This document shows positions 3,505 through 64,000 of a DNA stretch of 64,000 bases, one piece after another. Source of the stretch: Paraphysomonas bandaiensis (Eukaryota > Protista > Chrysophyceae); NCBI GenBank assembly GCA_965644295.1, contig CBFFRP010000016.1, positions 89,900 through 153,899 on the forward strand, in the 5' to 3' direction. Position 1 is the stretch's first letter. Each line of letters opens with the position of its first letter. The position numbers and the translations under genes are program-made. The notes beneath the pieces are model-generated. The model did no database searches, was not told the origin of the DNA, and saw nothing but the letters and a program-made list of their open reading frames with translations.

Positions 3505-6500
3505 ATGTATTATATTATCATACTCTGCGCTTTACTCTGCAGCACTGTGTCTGGTTATAATGTGACGTCTGCTGATCGTGTGGTGTGGAGTTCTAATAGT
3601 TTTGGATGTGTGATTCATTCTCCCGGACTGTCTCCATCCTTCTATGTGTTGTCGTCTGCATACAACTGTACGACAGCAGCATGTTGGAGAATGGAATGTG
3701 TACATTCGAACTGCTCTGGTCAAATAAGGGACATTGAGTTATTTTCGGATGGGTCACGGGGCAATCGTAGTGTTATGTTCACAGAGTTTTTATCCGGAAT
3801 GCGTTTTGGTCTCCCATCGATTTCACCCTCGATGATTCACATTTCAGTGGGTGAGCGTGTTGTCTCTGTTTCCCAAGTTCATCAAATTCTAACTGGAAAG
3901 AGTACACTCCCGAGTGTTTATTGTCATCCTTCTTTTGACTCTATATCTACTCGTTTACCACTCAACGCTAACAATTCTTTGTTACGCACCCTTCGGTTAC
4001 CCAATGAGACGATCTGTGAAGACTGTCCATGCGTGCACTTCAGTGGTGAAGACAACAAGTGTTCTTTACGTCTAGTGTGCACAGAGGAAGTAAAGAGTAA
4101 TAATCGAGAAAACACCATGTTTTCATGTTGTCCTGGCCTTGTTAGTGAAGATACTCATTCAGTTGCTTCCCATTCGGCTCCTATTACTGCTACATTCAGC
4201 CCCGATGGCCTCTCGTTCTCAGTACATTTTGTATCTCAATATTTGATTCCAATGAGTTGGTTGGTATCAGATATTTCACATGAGTCCACAAAAAAATGGG
4301 GGCTTTCAACCGCACCCCCGTATGCTAATTGTCAAACTATTTTCTCTCCTGCTACGTATTCTCGGTTACTCCCTCCTAACTACCGTGTGACCAATACCTA
4401 CCCAGTGTGCAAGTGGATGGATGACACAGGAAATAGCGACGCCGTCGTTCTAATGGTGTATTTGCCAAATAATGCACTCATACGAGCAAGTGAATGGTTA
4501 GGATTCTCATTCAATGTGAATTTATCGACCACTGAAACTCGAGGAGGCGCTGTTAGCGAAGCTGTATTGGAACGAGAGTTGCTGAGTCGGTGGGTGGACA
4601 TAAAAAATAGATATGATTCGATTGCAGCTGCTGACCATGAGTCTATCATTTATGCCAGTAACCGCAGTAAATTAGTTGACAGCACTAAAGTTGGAAATAT
4701 ATCGTGGGTCATCAGTCTCTCTAGCTCTAGTAGAGCTCCAACGCGGGCGCCAACTGAACCCCCCAGTATTCGTCCTTCCACTGACCCCTCGTTATCTCCA
4801 TCCTACGTTCCATCTGAAACAAGTCCTAGCCTTTCACCAACACATGTTCTGCATAATGTATCAGCGTACCCGTTTTCTGAAGTCAATAGTTCTGAACATA
4901 TTGACGGAAATAGGACGTCTAATCGGCCCACAGCAGCAGTGCTGAATATGTCATCCACTGCTCAGGGTGCAGTTAATACCACTACCCTTGATATTACAGT
5001 TAATGATTACAATAGCAGCACACATAACAATGGTTCTTTCTTCTTTCTTTTACCTTATTACTCGTTGTCAGTTAATTACTCGACCGTTTTGCTTCCGCCG
5101 CCCTCCGGATGGGTCGAGCCAACACTCCTCCTTTTAGCACCGTCTGAGATTTATTCGCCTTGTTTGTCGTGGCCATGTAGTCAGGCCACCCCTGGAAATG
5201 AGTTGGTACTTGATGCGTCAGCATCATATGGAGGTGGTATTGTCGGATTGTCATTTTCATGGTTTGTCTCGTCTGTGTCATGTACCCAAGTGTCCACCAA
5301 ATGCCTCTACTCCACCGCTGTACTGGATAGTAATATGGCTGCAATTGAGAGTTATATACTGAGAAATTTCGGTGATAGTGACAGCATATTACGAATACCA
5401 TCGCGATTACTTCTCTCAAATACTCTCATCAGTTTACATATTTCACTGTCCAGCGAGCCGAGCAGAACATACGAGTCGACGTATGCAGACGTTGATGTCG
5501 TCATCACTGATCATGTATCGCCTACCGTGACAATTGATGCTTGTTATTTTCATTCAAACTCTAGTAAGATGCATAGAGACCCTCCTAATTTTGTTTTGAA
5601 CGGGCAGAAGACTCCAATTCAACGAAGTATTTTGTGGGATATGAATACCCTTGATCCTCTCCAACCCATCATTGACTTTCCTTTCAACTCCCTTCCGTTA
5701 TCCCATGATGTTCAGTTTTTTTGGGCTGTGTATGATTTCGTTGAGATAAATGCCTCAATGTATGAGAAGAATTCAGCGGCAAATAGTTCCAGTTCAGATG
5801 TAGAGAAATCAGCAACTTATGAAGTTTCACTGACAACAGAAAATAGAAGTGTGAATGGTCGACTGGTTTTCAGTAGTCGAAGTCGATTGTTGTCTATACC
5901 ACCAGGGCTTCTTGAGTGTGGCAGTGTGCTTGAGTGTTCTCCTCGTAATCAGAGTAGATACATTGTCACTTTGGCTGTTGATATGCATAGTCCAAGGGAC
6001 GTAAATCGTGCTGGCGAAACACCTGTTGTAGTTGCATGGCTGAATGTTTTGCCCCTTCGCGTTGCACCTCGTATTATAGGAGGTAGCCGATGCGTTCATT
6101 CTGACACTGCTGTTGTTCTTCAAAATGCTCAAATTAGTGGTATTGATGAGAGTAGGGTTTCATATGAATGGTCATGCTGGGTTGTCGATACACGAAATGC
6201 GGAGATTATGGAGGGTACGCAGTCAGGCCCGATTAATTTTCAAACTCAGTGCAGTACTGGGAACGAATTTTCTTCCATATCGAACGAAATAACATCAGCT
6301 GATATATCTCGCACAGCCAGCTGTACCCCGAGCCTCCGAATTGGGTGCGGCGGCCATAATATTACAACACGACGTCGAAAAAGAGTTCAGTCTACGAGCG
6401 ACTTCTTAATCTTAGAGCCATATAGCTTAGCTGAAGGTGTGCAGTATAAAATATGCCTTGGTTTGCGATTGGGGAGCAGTTCTAGTAACCATCACTGTGT

Positions 6501-9500
6501 GGGAGTGTATGTATATATTCCTGATTTTAGTGATAGTATTGAGTTACACTCCAATGCTAGTTTGCGAGAGAAATCTATTTTCCTAGGTCCCGCTGGCCCA
6601 CCTTCAATGAATGTTGACAGCCGCTTGAAAAGCTTTGCGCCATTTTTGATTCATGCTCCTTTTATTTTCGATATACGAAGGGGACGTCGGCCAACTGGTG
6701 GACATGCTGCTGAAATAAATAGCGAACATCCAGTGAGAGTGCTGGCCCTTATGCAGTCTGTGAACACCTCGTCGCCTGGAATGTATCGATTACCTATTTG
6801 CAGCACAATGTCAACCACGAACACTCCGAGTACGCAGTGGGGCATTTCTCAGATCCTGCCTAAAGTTCATGCTTTACATAAAAATGCACCTGCGAATGCG
6901 GTGGTGTATCTTCAGTCAACCCATTCAGGTCAGCTGTCGATTGCGAGAAATAGTTTCAGCGGTGGACTATCATTTGTATTATCTGTTACTGGTAAATGCC
7001 ATAGCAATGATATGCATGGTTTCGTTGAGCGGGGTTATGCTGAAATTAATGTTGTTGTCCGAACAGAACCCTGGGATGGAAGCTTAAATGTATTTCCTTC
7101 AACTGGGACGGCATTTGAAACAATGTTTTCTGTGCGACAAAGTGACTGGCTGGTCTCAAGCTACGATTCCGACTTACCATTGCAATTTTCCTTTCACTAC
7201 TCTTCGTCGCATATTTTGAATAAAATCAATCCTGACGCTGTATTAGAGAACTTTACTGCTTACTATCACCATGCTTCGAATGAACGTGGAGAACTGATAA
7301 TGCACCCCAATTCGATTTGTTTCCGAGACTGGATGCGAACGCCACACGCAACTCTGCGAGCTCCTCACTTACGACCCTCAGCTGTGGATATATCAAACCC
7401 ATACAATGGGTACGACAATCTCTGGAACGCATCTCTCTTCTCAAACTCATGTTCTATTATTGTTGTGTCTGGCTATGTCAGAACATACGCCGGTGGAATC
7501 GCTGTACGACATGCTGATATTAGTGTATGTCCCCCACCGATTGTGTCCACATCTGTAAATGCTATCACCGAAGCCAAGGTGTACTCCAAGAATCTATCTA
7601 CTATGGCAGCCCTGAAAGTTGTTCATGATTATACTGATAATATATCGACAACTGTACTGTCGAACTACATACGATCCCAGGACACATTGCAGTCGGTCTC
7701 AATGCTGCATTCACTAGCCTCTTTTATGAACACTTATTTACCCAAATCTCCGTGGGGTGTATTCAAGTCCTCATGCAGAAGACGCGAAATGAGAACCACT
7801 ATGATCGCACAGCTGGAGGTGGTAGCATCTTGGCAACTCACACGATCGAACGTCACCATCGAAAAAACAAACTTGGAATTCAATACGGTGGATTTCACAT
7901 ACATGCGACTTGTTCCTTTTGTATTCTCACAAGCATGCATAGAACTTGGTCTCTTCCCCCATGATATGAATGAAGTCGGAAAAAAAAGGCTACTGCGCTT
8001 AGTCTATGCCATAGTTAAGATGCGTTTGGCGGATGCACAACCAACGACAACTAGCCTAGGGTATTCTCGGGAGGAGAATTGTGTGAGTCTGTTTTATAGT
8101 CGGTATGCGTCGTCGGTATCCTATCTCCTAGCTACTCTCGACCATTCTGCCCCTCTGATAGTGAAGACTTATAACGATAGCACGAAATCGCCTATGAGAG
8201 AAATGCGAAGTAATGGATATGATATCAAGGGGTATATTCATGAACTTCCTGGAGCGAACCTCAGTCATGATACTCTGTACAAGCAATCGTTGTTGGGGTT
8301 GAGACAGATTTTGGTGGGTTGTTCGCTATTGGGTGACACGGTGGGAAGTGGGGTTGATCAGACTTTATATTCTCTTCCCTTACCACAGCCACAACTCCGC
8401 ACAAATACTCCAACTTTGAGTCCTACTTCACACACTAGTGGACCGTTTAACAATATGACACTGAATAGGCCTGACGATTCTCTACGGTACAATCAAAATA
8501 TTACAAGAAATTTTTCCAATAGCTCTTTTTTTGTTAACTTTACTTTAAACGAGCTCGTGAATTCTACTGCAGATGATTTTAGCTTATCGCCTACTCCTTC
8601 TCAGACGCCGTCGGTATATACGTCTTTGCAATCACAGGAGTTCGTTGAGTTTCTTTACGAGGGAGGAAGTCAAATTGCAGCTCTGAGACAGCCAGCATTC
8701 ATTGATATATCTCAGGCATCTGTTGTTGTGGGTGAAAACCAGAATTCTGGTGGTCCAGATGATATTGAATATCGTCCACCTGGATTTAGTGCGGAGAGCA
8801 GTATAGATCCTTCTACCCACTCGTTTTTACAACTTCCTTGTGAATCTTCGAATTCAGCTGATTGCTATTCCTCGTCATCGCTAATTACACGCTCGCGAAA
8901 AAGTCTTCATGCATTGTCACTGCATGAAGTGTTTGAATTGACAGCTTCTTCTGAAGGATATATCGATATATCTTTGTTTAATATCGCTCAGCGAGATGTC
9001 AGCGGACAGGAACTGTCAGCGTCTGACACATTTACTAGTAGGAGTACCTCTTCATCATGGGGAGAAAGAAACGAAGAGTACTTGGGCAGGTCGTGGATAC
9101 CTCATTCTGGTGACGATCGCGGTGTATCGGATGCTGTCATTGTTGAGTTTAAGACCTATGGCGACGACGTCGAACCTCTCTATAATCTATCACGACCAGT
9201 TGAGGTTGGAGTCAAAGTTTCTCGTCCAGACGTGCTCTGGAAGCTAGTGGTGATAGAAGATGAAGATTTATTCGATGGCGTGTCGAAACAATACAGGCCA
9301 CCTTATCTACGCTCTTCTGGCGCAAGTGTTGTAAATATTACTCGCGACAACGAATATTTAGAGGGATATTTGTCTTTTTCTCCTCGATGGGTTAGGTGCG
9401 AAATGTTCGACTCTGATAGTATGACTTGGGTGAAGCCTTCTTGGCTGGATGGATGGTGGTCACCTGACGTTGTTTCTTTCACAAGTCGGAAGGAGCTTGA

Positions 9501-10566: not shown

Positions 10567-12065
10567 TTGGAATTTTTGCTGTATGTTTATATTTTGTGTG
10601 TTTATATTTATTGCTGCTACGAGTATAGAAATATGTGGTGACTAGTGTTAGATTCAGTTTGCAGTCGCATGGTAAAGGCCCTTAATGCCATATTGCTGGG
10701 TAATAAGGAAGCGACTACATATTTTCATCGGATATGCAACAAGATTGGAATGGAATTAAATATTTAGCTTGACAATGATGCGGCTGTATTGTCCGTGTGT
10801 AGGTCGCTTCATAGAATCACACTGTGATGATATCCTGTGTCGGAACCATTGATTCACAGCTGCTGTTCTTTTGATCTAGTCCGAGTAGATGACTGAGTAG
10901 TAAGATTATGATGAATCCCATGTGATGGTAATTCCCTTAGATGTATTATGTGACACTCGGATGACTTAATGGACTCTATCCTAGTATGATCTTAATGGGT
11001 TATGTCCCTAAGAGGATATACCCTCCAGTGAACATGTTATTGATCCTGTTGCTAAAATGGGTCCTAGTCGCTAGTAGCCTCCTACAACTCCATAGGTCTC
11101 CCCTGTCGTCTGTAGTTATAACGTGAATGACTATATATCTAATATCTACCTCGCTAGGCTGAAAGCAACTTCTCATAGTTTAAGTATGATGTCCGATACT
11201 TACAACTGCTGCACTGTTACTTACGCATAGCGAAGTTAAACTTCCGAACGGAAAGCCTTCTTTCAGGATATTTAGCGCACGGGCGGCGATTTGCAAAATA
11301 TCGAAAAGTAATTCTGCTATAAAACATGGTATCTCAGAAGCTGGCATGATTCATCAACAGCACTGTGGCTTGTCTGGACCCCACATTCCTCATAATCAGA
11401 TGGTTGTTTTATTCAGCCCGTTCAAGATGATGCTCATCAGACCCCACTCTACTTCCATATGCTCAATAAGGCACTGTTAAAAACCTCGTCGTCCTGATAG
11501 CCCTTAACTTAAATCGTCGCGTTGCTTGTGTTGCAGGTTCTGATTGTAATCCGAATGATCTCTCTTCTAATTGTTATGGATGCGGATAACAACCATGACA
11601 TCTGTATGCTAAGGATCAGCTTCCTATACATAGTCCCAATGATGACGACCTTTAGAAAATTTTTATTGATATGATTGCTGACTCTACAACATACCGTAGA
11701 GATTTTTCCTCTGGCAGATTGACTTGTGCCGACCGAATAATGTATAGAAAACAGATATTGCTCTACCCACTCATAGCCACAACATGCTCTCTAATTGTGT
11801 TTTATTAAGTCAACAAGAATTAATAATTGGCACACACTGAATAAATTATAAGGAAAAACAATCAGATAGTAGGTTAGTACGGATATTCTACTCGATTAGG
11901 GTTATCTCGAACGCATGTATTGAATACATATGCTGCAAAGTGCTGTAGCAGCAGAGAGAGTCAAGTCTAAATTGCTACCTTACATTGAAGACAAGTCTAT
12001 GTACATTGAAGACAAGACTATCAGTATACCCTCAACAATATCGGACTCGCACCTTTTCGTGGTGT

Positions 12066-56827: not shown

Positions 56828-57424
56828 GACCTGACCAGAACTATGTGTGGAATATGTATGTATGTATGTCCCTTCCGTTCACTTCTCTGATGTACAGCAG
56901 TGTATGTACAGTACGTAAAAATAGAAATATCTCAAAGAGAATACGCACCGTTTAATAAAATGTGTTGGAATTCGTATCTCTTTGTACAATCGGATAGAGA
57001 GAGTATGCTGTATGCGGGTATGTGACGGCATGCCGCATGGATAGGCTAGAAAGAGATCAGACAAACAGATTTCTTGAACATTTTAGTTTTTACATCGCGA
57101 AATAGACAAAATATCAAAAAAATCCTATTGTAAAAAATTTCTACAACAAAATTGACCAAATTATTGTACTTCATTATCCTATACTATAAAATATATCAAA
57201 GTACTATTTACAAAATTTCACCCGCTAAAATAAAAAAAAGCAATAAATAAAAAAATTCAAAGAAATATTTTGGTCAAGCATTTCAGACCGGTCACATTGA
57301 CCGATCAATCCACACACAAGCACATTGCAACAATACAACGACAACAACAACTTCAGATCATGAATTCACCAAACTCAGACAATTCTAATAAAAGATAGCA
57401 ATCTACATGTGTGTGATCAATGTC

Positions 57425-60600: not shown

Positions 60601-63404
60601 TTTACGGCTGAATGTTTCATGTCGATACTCCTGTGTCTATGAGAGGGTGCAATCCTTGTATGTATTTATATGCGCGCAATTGTATGTGAGGATACCGATT
60701 TTAACGTTTGTGTGTCATGTAGGTTTTACCATCAATGTGTTGGGAGTCAGTTCGATCTTGACTAGTTAACGCGGAAGGTAACATATATATGACACAGTCC
60801 CGAATTGTATGCTGTGTGTGATCAATGTCCCCTCTATGATTATATATATTATAAATGGGTAATTTACGGCTGAATGTTTCATGTCGATACTCCTGTGTCT
60901 ATGAGAGGGTGCAATCCTTGTATGTATTTATATGCGCGCAATTGTATGTGAGGATACCGATTTTAACGTTTGTGTGTCATGTAGGTTTTACCATCAATGT
61001 GTTGGGAGTCAGTTCGATCTTGACTAGTTAACCGGAAGGTAACATATATATGACACAGTCCCGAATTGTATGCTGTGTGTGATCAATGTCCCCTCTATGA
61101 TTATATATATTATAAATGGGTAATTTACGGCTGAATGTTTCATGTCGATACTCCTGTGTCTATGAGAGGGTGCAATCCTTGTATGTATTTATATGCGCGC
61201 AATTGTATGTGAGGATACCGATTTTAATGTTTGTGTGTCATGTAGGTTTTACCATCAATGTGTTGGGAGTCAGTTCGATCTTGACTAGTTAACGCGGAAG
61301 GTAACATATATATGACACAGTCCCGAATTGTATGCTGTGTGTGATCAATGTCCCCTCTATGATTATATATATTATAAATGGGTAATTTACGGCTGAATGT
61401 TTCATGTCGATACTCCTGTGTCTATGAGAGGGTGTAATCCTTGTATGTATTTATATGCGCGCAATTGTATGTGAGGATACCGATTTTAACGTTTGTGTGT
61501 CATGTAGGTTTTACCATCAATGTGTTGGGAGTCAGTTCGATCTTGACTAGTTAACGCGGAAGGTAACATATATATGACACAGTCCCGAATTGTATGCTGT
61601 GTGTGATCAATGTCCCCTCTATGATTATATATATTATAAATGGGTAATTTACGGCTGAATGTTTCATGTCGATACTCCTGTGTCTATGAGAGGGTGTAAT
61701 CCTTGTATGTATTTATATGCGCGCAATTGTATGTGAGGATACCGATTTTAACGTTTGTGTGTCATGTAGGTTTTACCATCAATGTGTTGGGAGTCAGTTC
61801 GATCTTGACTAGTTAACCGGAAGGTAACATATATATGACACAGTCCCGAATTGTATGCTGTGTGTGATCAATGTCCCCTCTATGATTATATATATTATAA
61901 ATGGGTAATTTACGGCTGAATGTTTCATGTCGATACTCCTGTGTCTATGAGAGGGTGCAATCCTTGTATGAATTTATATGCGCGCAATTGTCTGTGAGGA
62001 TACCGATTTTAACGTTTGTGTGTCGTGTAGGTTTTACCATCAATGTGTTGGGAGTCAGTTCGATCTTGACTAGTTAACGCGGAAGGTAACATATATATGA
62101 CACAGTCCCGAATTGTATGCTGTGTGTGATCAATGTCCCCTCTATGATTATATATATTATAAATGGGTAATTTACGGCTGAATGTTTCATGTCGATACTC
62201 CTGTGTCTATGAGAGGGTGCAATCCTTGTATGTATTTATATGCGCGCAATTGTATGTGAGGATACCGATTTTAACGTTTGTGTGTCATGTAGGTTTTACC
62301 ATCAATGTGTTGGGAGTCAGTTCGATCTTGACTAGTTAACGCGGAAGGTAACATATATATGACACAGTCCCGAATTGTATGCTGTGTGTGATCAATGTCC
62401 CCTCTATGATTATATATATTATAAATGGGTAATTTACGGCTGAATGTTTCATGTCGATACTCCTGTGTCTATGAGAGGGTGCAATCCTTGTATGTATTTA
62501 TATGCGCGCAATTGTATGTGAGGATACCGATTTTAACGTTTGTGTGTCATGTAGGTTTTACCATCAATGTGTTGGGAGTCAGTTCGATCTTGACTAGTTA
62601 ACCGGAAGGTAACATATATATGACACAGTCCCGAATTGTATGCTGTGTGTGATCAATGTCCCCTCTATGATTATATATATTATAAATGGGTAATTTACGG
62701 CTGAATGTTTCATGTCGATACTCCTGTGTCTATGAGAGGGTGCAATCCTTGTATGAATTTATATGCGCGCAATTGTCTGTGAGGATACCGATTTTAACGT
62801 TTGTGTGTCGTGTAGGTTTTACCATCAATGTGTTGGGAGTCAGTTCGATCTTGACTAGTTAACGCGGAAGGTAACATATATATGACACAGTCCCGAATTG
62901 TATGCTGTGTGTGATCAATGTCCCCTCTATGATTATATATATTATAAATGGGTAATTTACGGCTGAATGTTTCATGTCGATACTCCTGTGTCTATGAGAG
63001 GGTGTAATCCTTGTATGTATTTATATGCGCGCAATTGTATGTGAGGATACCGATTTTAACGTTTGTGTGTCATGTAGGTTTTACCATCAATGTGTTGGGA
63101 GTCAGTTCGATCTTGACTAGTTAACGCGGAAGGTAACATATATATGACACAGTCCCGAATTGTATGCTGTGTGTGATCAATGTCCCCTCTATGATTATAT
63201 ATATTATAAATGGGTAATTTACGGCTGAATGTTTCATGTCGATACTCCTGTGTCTATGAGAGGGTGCAATCCTTGTATGTATTTATATGCGCGCAATTGT
63301 CTGTGAGGATACCGATTTTAACGTTTGTGTGTCATGTAGGTTTTACCATCAATGTGTTACATCTCGTGTTACACCCACTTCGATTGTACACATATACACA
63401 CGTC

Positions 63405-63563
63405 GGCGTCCTGTTTAGAGTCGCACCTATAGCGAATCAATGCTATTAGCGTGTGCTGAAGGGCGCCAATATACCTGCACAGGATGAACCCCTGCGGTGT
63501 GGCTGATGTTATTGCACTTTAGATAGCCGCAGCCATGCCATATGAAGTCGCAGTGGAACATAT
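63405..63563 (+). ncRNA. SNORA3: Box H/ACA snoRNA, SNORA3 (ACA3)/snR11-like, copy 1
   Basis: Hairpin GGCGTCC...GGGCGCC with pocket strands TTAGAGTC and GCT, which pair either side of the UU in LSU rRNA GAGC-UU-GACUCUAG (yeast Psi2416 site). An H-like AATATA/ATATAC lies 13-14 nt from the pocket; a second hairpin CTGCGG/TCGCAG is followed by ACA-TAT. Confidence 0.72.
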
Positions 63564-63754
63564 TTATTACCTCACACCATACAACAACACATCCTACACA
63601 ATTTCATTACGTGGATGACAACTATTCTTACTATTGTATTGGTAGATATGCTGATGGGTGGGATGTGTTACTCATACGGCTCCATTATTGGATATGGCAA
63701 GGTAAGCATATTCTTGTGTTACACCCACTTCGATTGTACACATATACACACGTC

Positions 63755-63913
63755 GGCGTCCTGTTTAGAGTCGCACCTATAGCGAATCAATGCTATTAGC
63801 GTGTGCTGAAGGGCGCCAATATACCTGCACAGGATGAACCCCTGCGGTGTGGCTGATGTTATTGCACTTTAGATAGCCGCAGCCATGCCATATGAAGTCG
63901 CAGTGGAACATAT
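63755..63913 (+). ncRNA. SNORA3: Box H/ACA snoRNA, SNORA3/snR11-like, copy 2
   Basis: Identical to copy 1 and located inside the complete intron 63702-63995. Confidence 0.72.
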
Positions 63914-64000
63914 TTATTACCTCACACCATACAACAACACATCCTACACAATTTCATTACATGGATGACAACTATTCTTACTATTGTGTTGGTAGATATG

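Follow-up and report, generated by a model that had tools for sequence, protein, structure and literature searches.

The window that we analyzed is a stretch of 64,000 nucleotides (nt) from the chrysophyte Paraphysomonas bandaiensis (positions 89,900 to 153,899 of contig CBFFRP010000016.1 in the assembly GCA_965644295.1; below, this is G000:C16:89900-153899, and the other contigs are from the same assembly, G000). At its far end is a tandem repeat with a 350-bp period. Each unit of the repeat consists of a non-coding exon and an intron, and the intron contains a predicted box H/ACA small nucleolar RNA (snoRNA) (Table 1). Just upstream, on the same strand, is an array of box C/D units: a 262-bp tandem unit with a 55-nt exon, present in 22.7 copies. 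The H/ACA array starts 7 nt past a remnant of the last C/D exon. The window ends where contig C16 ends, and it includes 1.8 units of the H/ACA array. Within it, positions 63716-64000 copy positions 63366-63650 with 2 differences across 285 nt. The first-pass annotation of this DNA had described a 350-bp unit directly after the C/D array, with a 56-nt exon and a 294-nt intron; the self-match at period 350 and the positions of the splice sites bear out both descriptions.

Table 1. Features of the H/ACA array and of its junction with the C/D array (window positions; LSU, large-subunit ribosomal RNA).
Feature	Position	Strand	Remarks
Cut-off last exon of the upstream C/D array	63340..63358	+	First 19 of 55 nt, without the 5' splice site; compare the full exon at 63078-63132
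Junction filler ACATCTC, 7 nt	63359..63365	.	Between the C/D and H/ACA arrays; TGTGTTACA-type microhomology on both sides
First 350-bp unit	63366..63715	+	Same sequence in 18 of the 26 C207 copies that are in register
Predicted H/ACA snoRNA, copy 1, 159 nt	63405..63563	+	Ends inferred from the base of the stem and from ACA+3
Hairpin 1	63405..63467	+	8-bp lower stem 63405-63412/63460-63467; upper stem 63424-63433/63442-63453
5' guide arm UGUUUAGAGUC	63412..63422	+	UAGAGUC pairs with LSU GACUCUA, plus one G-U pair
3' guide arm GCUGAA	63455..63460	+	Pairs with LSU UUGAGC, with one G-G mismatch; first base is 14 nt before the H-like box
H-like hinge box AUAUAC	63469..63474	+	AGAACG in the orthologue, in the same register
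Hairpin 2	63474..63556	+	Large internal loop
ACA box	63558..63560	+	3 nt further is the predicted 3' end (63563); ACA or AUA at the matching place in the orthologue
Non-coding exon ATATGC...GGCAAG, 56 nt	63646..63701	+	Preceded by AG at 63644-63645; exon-exon contigs in runs X1, X2, and X3
Intron, 294 nt	63702..63995	+	5' GTAAGC (63702-63707), 3' AG (63994-63995); contains snoRNA copy 2
Predicted H/ACA snoRNA, copy 2	63755..63913	+	Identical to copy 1
Exon start, first 5 nt	63996..64000	+	Followed by the end of the window and of contig C16

To see how far the array extends, we compared one unit to the whole assembly with BLAST. We found 27.1 further units, 99-100% identical, on the minus strand of another contig (C207:60802-70281). 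Because C16 and C207 both end within the array, we infer that the array spans an assembly gap, running from the plus strand of C16 into the minus strand of C207. Together, C207 and the window hold 27-29 copies of the unit. The units on C207 differ at only three sites (positions 24, 143, and 222 of the unit), and the only one that touches the predicted RNA, 143, varies in a single copy. That the copies are nearly identical suggests that they were amplified recently or have evolved in concert. Tandem Repeats Finder detected the 350-bp period on C207; the repeat is missing from its list for the window because fewer than two copies are there. The sequence of the unit is also present in marine metatranscriptomes and in the data of several other organisms.

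Beyond the last, partial unit on C207, the DNA is unique; further on come a long (ATAC)n run and sequence that looks coding. The (ATAC)n run is a perfect microsatellite of 585 bp (G000:C207:59248-59832), about 1 kb past the end of the array. It had been suggested that the locus consists of serial snoRNA arrays and that more copies and more unit types might lie downstream. The additional copies are there, as are two adjoining arrays on the same strand, but we found no third type of unit beyond the H/ACA array in the downstream sequence of C207.

To ask if the repeat is transcribed and spliced, we compared four sequencing runs (X1, X2, X3, and X17), as contigs, over positions 63060-63740 of the window. 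X1 is a random-primed metatranscriptome and X3 is a polyadenylated (polyA) metatranscriptome. X2 behaves as polyA RNA, since the C/D exons are present in it and the C/D intron is wholly missing. The joint between successive exons that had been predicted from the sequence, GGCAAG|ATATGC, is present in the RNA contigs of three independent studies. In X1, there are 58-nt exon-to-exon contigs as well as the unspliced unit. In X2, a contig over 63644-63701 has the loose end ATATGCTG (that is, the joint GGCAAG|ATATGCTG) and a depth of 13,375, compared to 416 for the intron contig. In X3, an 86-nt exon-to-exon contig has the loose end ATATGGCA before 63644; its depth is 254, compared to 8 for the intron. 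Thus, in the two polyA-type libraries, the exon is about 30 times deeper than the intron. The 55-nt C/D exons are spliced to one another in the same RNA runs. A branch-like CTTAC is found at 63627-63631, 15 nt ahead of the AG. Another contig of X3 exits the last unit into the flank TGTATTTATGTATG... (TGTATTTATG...), which matches C207; therefore, a polyadenylated transcript runs past the far end of the array.

The spliced RNA is unlikely to encode a protein. There is a TGA in frame 1 at 63652-63654. Since the exon length is 56 = 3x18+2, every reading frame hits a TGA, and this happens within three exons (168 nt). Judging by the reading of a single exon, the exon appears to lack protein-coding capacity.

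The 290-nt RNA contig of X2 (63411-63701, depth 416) also has an odd joint. After the spliced joint GGCAAG|ATATGCTG, its sequence skips to TTTAGAGTC at 63414. The skip amounts to a 110-nt deletion with CTG microhomology; most of an exon is lost, together with the 5' splice site and, from the lower stem of hairpin 1, the 5' strand. In the genome, the odd joint has only a chance match, with one mismatch, in coding DNA on C1. It may come from a variant unit that lies where the array is not assembled, or from a template switch by reverse transcriptase.

Read depth gives some idea of the true copy number. X17 is probably DNA: its contigs, which total about 90 Mb, contain the 262-bp tandem joint as it is in the genome, and also the outer flank on either side; one of these flanks matches positions 57379-57408 of the window. 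In X17, the depth of the contig for the C/D unit is 2193, and the contigs for the H/ACA unit have depths of 10,583-11,217. If X17 is DNA and if it has 22.7 copies of the C/D unit, both of which this scaling presupposes, then there are perhaps 110 copies of the H/ACA unit, or roughly 40 kb.

The intron contains a sequence that folds as expected for a box H/ACA RNA. Positions 63404-63566 fold into two hairpins that are separated by a 6-nt hinge and followed by ACA. The minimum free energy is -59.5 kcal/mol, compared to a mean of -47.3 for shuffled sequences (z = -3.0). The upper stem of hairpin 1 consists of 3 bp, a bulge, 3 bp, another bulge, and 4 bp, capped by an 8-nt loop. The hairpin-hinge-hairpin-tail arrangement of the H/ACA class is thus present, both in the fold and in the covariation of hairpin 1 (see below). 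Members of this class are stable RNAs of ~130-160 nt, bound by Cbf5, Nop10, Nhp2, and Gar1; of these proteins, Gar1 and Nop10 were located among the genes of this genome. We also noticed the motif AGUCGCA (63545-63551) just before the ACA or AUA box in both of the lineages that we discuss below. It resembles the guide arm of hairpin 1 (GAGUCGC), and it is too near the box to be the arm of a pocket.

In H/ACA RNAs, the guide pocket is located 14-16 nt before the box. Hairpin 1 has a bipartite pocket at a distance of 14 nt. The genome's own LSU rRNA (on C545; 1500 bits to the Rfam LSU model) includes ...CCCUGUUGAGCUUGACUCUAGUCCGAC..., and the pocket of hairpin 1 (UAGAGUC/GCU) fits the LSU site GAGC-UU-GACUCUAG, with the UU left unpaired. 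On the 5' side of the UU, 3+2 base pairs form; on the other side, there are 7 Watson-Crick pairs and one G-U pair with GACUCUAG. Across 4.9 kb of this genome's rRNA, this site is the pocket's best match, with a score of 11.5 compared to 7.5 for the next site. Among 3,000 shuffled pockets, 81 (2.7%) score equally well somewhere on the rRNA.

The site corresponds to a known pseudouridine. The modifications listed for yeast 25S rRNA include Psi2416 (guided by snR11), Um2417, and Um2421 (PMC5699541). We assign the first U of the unpaired UU to position 2416 because the offsets 0, +1, and +5 fit the U, U, and U of UUGACU only in this way. (We take the yeast sequence to be the same as this LSU site.) By complementarity, then, the RNA would guide the modification of the uridine that is equivalent to yeast 25S U2416. 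The first-pass annotation had proposed a two-hairpin RNA that ends in ACA+3, with a 5' pocket that fits the LSU at the snR11 site; the fold, the complementarity to the genome's own rRNA, and the compensatory changes described below all agree with this. It had also likened the pocket to that of human SNORA3 and suggested a search with models of SNORA3 and snR11. That search came back empty: no H/ACA family of Rfam 15, including SNORA3, matched the 191-nt stretch at E <= 10 or 8 kb of sequence at E <= 1. We found no link between SNORA3 and this LSU site in the papers that we searched.

The nuclear LSU rRNA is spread over several contig ends. At C525:9816-10317 (G000), a fragment of LSU rRNA (model positions 818-1347) is directly upstream of a full small-subunit (SSU) rRNA gene, on the same strand. 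This is either an odd order of the ribosomal DNA (rDNA) or a misassembly.

To find relatives of the RNA, we scanned metagenome contigs for the pattern TGTTTAGAGTC, a gap of 26-38 nt, and GCTGAAGG, which fixes the guide arms and leaves the upper stem free. Seven contigs whose accessions begin with JAABU each contain one copy, with the same 32-nt gap and a GC content of 66-70%. These contigs are from metagenomes of Antarctic cryptoendolithic rock (PMC7171226). They align without gaps to the RNA from the window. The upper stem is 100% paired, and 8 of its 10 pairs have changed on both sides. One pair of the lower stem also varies (U-G, G-C, or A-C), so that 9 of the 18 pairs in hairpin 1 have changed on both sides in all. 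Overall, 98% of the cells of the alignment are paired, compared to 33-43% if the partners are slid, and no shuffle reaches the observed covariation. The bulges, the length of the loop, and the register of the box (AGAACG) are common to the two RNAs. At the 3' end, one contig has the box ACA, and the rest have AUA. The orthologue had no match in Rfam.

The orthologue is on the sense strand of an intron of about 700 nt in a gene for a WD40 protein similar to TBL3/UTP13. The host exons match human TBL3/UTP13 in PDB (7mq8_LR, E = 1.6e-21). In this genome, the TBL3/UTP13 gene was located on C80 by its C-terminal domain only. The array RNA and the JAABU orthologue share their guide arms, the architecture of hairpin 1, the register of the H box, and an ACA or AUA box. 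Unlike the array, the orthologue is single-copy and placed in a protein-coding gene of a GC-rich eukaryote, and the stem of its hairpin 2 is almost uninterrupted. The covariance model for hairpin 1 rejected the other 19 matches to the pattern as homologues, and neither the Ga0209780 group nor L044 was convincing. Also, in JAABUV010000333.1 (around 6400-6600, minus strand), a tandem duplication seems to have affected the exon that directly follows the snoRNA intron, giving two near-copies of about 100 nt.

Where did the repeated module come from? A single-copy paralogue of the exon, 89% identical, is at C363:255371-255475 (G000). The similarity extends from 11 nt ahead of the exon to about 44 nt past it. 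At this locus, a 50-nt exon has the same splice sites (AG|ATATGC...GGCAAG|GTAAGC), and the first ~44 nt of the intron are common to both loci. Within the assembly, the 239 nt with the snoRNA are confined to the array. We considered whether the introns of the C363 paralogue carry a snoRNA of their own and rejected this: they have no clean H/ACA fold and no Rfam match. The sequences suggest that another non-coding host gene was the source of the module that was amplified. Two copies of the C/D unit, 91-92% identical to it and 1343 bp apart, are at C309:8150-8393 and C309:9493-9758 (G000); they may be an older or higher-order version of the C/D array. Since the paralogues of the two units differ in location (C309 for C/D and C363 for H/ACA), the two arrays have separate histories and were juxtaposed.

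Given these observations, we think it very likely that the repeat is a tandemly amplified, spliced, non-coding host gene for an H/ACA snoRNA that would guide the formation of one conserved LSU pseudouridine. RNA polymerase II would transcribe through the array. Because only 7 nt lie between the two arrays, transcription probably starts at a promoter upstream of the adjoining C/D array. Each 294-nt intron is removed at GTAAGC...AG, as the exon-exon contigs show, and the 56-nt exons are joined into a polyadenylated repeat RNA that has no reading frame. The excised intron would be trimmed to a box H/ACA ribonucleoprotein with an RNA of about 159 nt. The pocket of hairpin 1 would then pair with the LSU rRNA around the first U of GAGC-UU-GACUCUAG and present this U to Cbf5/dyskerin for conversion to pseudouridine.

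Several points weigh against this reading. The hinge is AAUAUAC, and its best register, AUAUAC, has A1 and A3 of the consensus ANANNA and a C at position 6. The loop of hairpin 2 is 18 nt from the ACA, and not 14-16 nt. Also, hairpin 2 has no credible target on the SSU, 5.8S, or LSU pieces of the rRNA: with 72 definitions of the pocket, all matches were at the level of noise. The best-looking matches of hairpin 2 were rejected because they are located outside the rRNA on C545. Hairpin 2 appears to be structural. The Rfam families, as described above, do not recognize the RNA. Only two lineages contribute to the covariation, and the pattern used for the search dictated the guide arms. The pseudouridylation of the LSU site is inferred from pairing. 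Finally, all four runs are contigs, from which the ends, sizes, and strand of the RNA cannot be read, and the adjacency and co-transcription of the two arrays rest on the assembly.

This last point leads to the alternative that the two arrays are separate transcription units, either because the H/ACA array has its own start or because the joint on C16 is an assembly error. We consider this doubtful, though worth keeping in mind. No contig from any of the four runs, including the DNA-like X17, covers positions 63336-63365; the last C/D exon is cut off and lacks its 5' splice site; the ratio of H/ACA to C/D exon depth ranges from about 1 to 63 among the libraries; and the paralogues of the two units are at different loci. 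The lack of a contig across the joint proves nothing, however, as assemblers typically drop low-depth links between high-depth repeats. Similarly, polyA libraries have a 3' bias, which alone would raise the depth of the H/ACA exons, as these are downstream. And the arrays are on the same strand with a separation of 7 nt, which leaves no space the size of a promoter.

It is very improbable that the repeat is an ordinary satellite that is transcribed and spliced by chance, with hairpins and a match to rRNA that are coincidental and no functional snoRNA. The missing Rfam match, the non-canonical H box, and the success rate of shuffled pockets would fit such a satellite. But hairpin 1 was kept through nine double-sided changes in a distant, GC-rich orthologue, which has the same arms and is in an intron of a ribosome-biogenesis gene. 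Moreover, the matched U is at a known, conserved pseudouridine site, and the geometry fits the 14-16 nt rule. We give equally little credence to the idea that the units, like snoRNA genes of plants or yeast, are each transcribed on their own, with the spliced exon RNA as a by-product of read-through. Transcription starts are not visible in contigs, but canonical splice sites frame each unit, polyA libraries are very rich in spliced exon RNA, no spacer or promoter-like element is found in the 39 nt before the snoRNA, and the orthologue is intronic.

The tandem, spliced snoRNA host gene that we favour can be compared to several known systems. Yeast snR11 is a guide of the same class, and its target uridine is the one predicted here (the first U of GAGC-UU-GACUCUAG); Um2417 and Um2421 fit the same sequence. 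The two guides have no detectable similarity by sequence or by covariance model. Also, snR11 is a single, independently transcribed gene, whereas the chrysophyte guide has tens to about 100 intronic copies.

In layout, the array resembles arrays of mammals. The SNORD116/115 arrays of SNURF-SNRPN and the SNORD113/114 arrays of MEG8 are imprinted box C/D arrays, mostly orphan, whose copies have diverged. Like them, the array has a long non-coding host with repeated modules of a short exon and an intron that contains one snoRNA, and the successive exons are spliced together in RNA. Unlike them, it is box H/ACA, its target is canonical rRNA, its copies are 99-100% identical, and it is directly behind a C/D array. 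Trypanosomatids and Euglena also keep both classes of guides as tandem repeats. Their clusters give rise to polycistronic precursors without exon-intron modules, in contrast to the modules here, and the H/ACA-like RNAs of trypanosomatids have a single hairpin and an AGA box. As far as we know, snoRNA arrays with a repeated exon and intron are known mainly from mammalian imprinted loci, where they are box C/D without known rRNA targets. We know of no published array that combines box H/ACA, a canonical rRNA target, near-identical copies, and a position directly behind a C/D array.

The array RNA and its orthologue would define an H/ACA family that is not yet catalogued. Covariation between two lineages is sufficient to seed a model of this family.

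More speculatively, P. bandaiensis might keep both classes of guides in the manner of its rDNA, as long, homogenised arrays. The C/D array and about 110 copies of the H/ACA unit could then form one RNA polymerase II unit of more than 45 kb, and the abundant spliced RNA with its 56-nt repeats could itself be functional. The guide might have moved from an intron of a ribosome-biogenesis gene, still its location in the distant orthologue, into a dedicated, amplifiable module that was borrowed from another host gene, the C363 paralogue. We put this scenario forward tentatively and think it less than likely as a whole.

The logic of the mammalian arrays is hard to study, because their rRNA targets are not known. 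Here, the same design appears to serve an H/ACA guide whose rRNA target is clear and conserved, and the organism is a free-living protist in which C/D guides are amplified as well. With one assayable pseudouridine, it would be possible to test how copy number affects dosage, how guide genes evolve in concert, and what becomes of the spliced repeat RNA.

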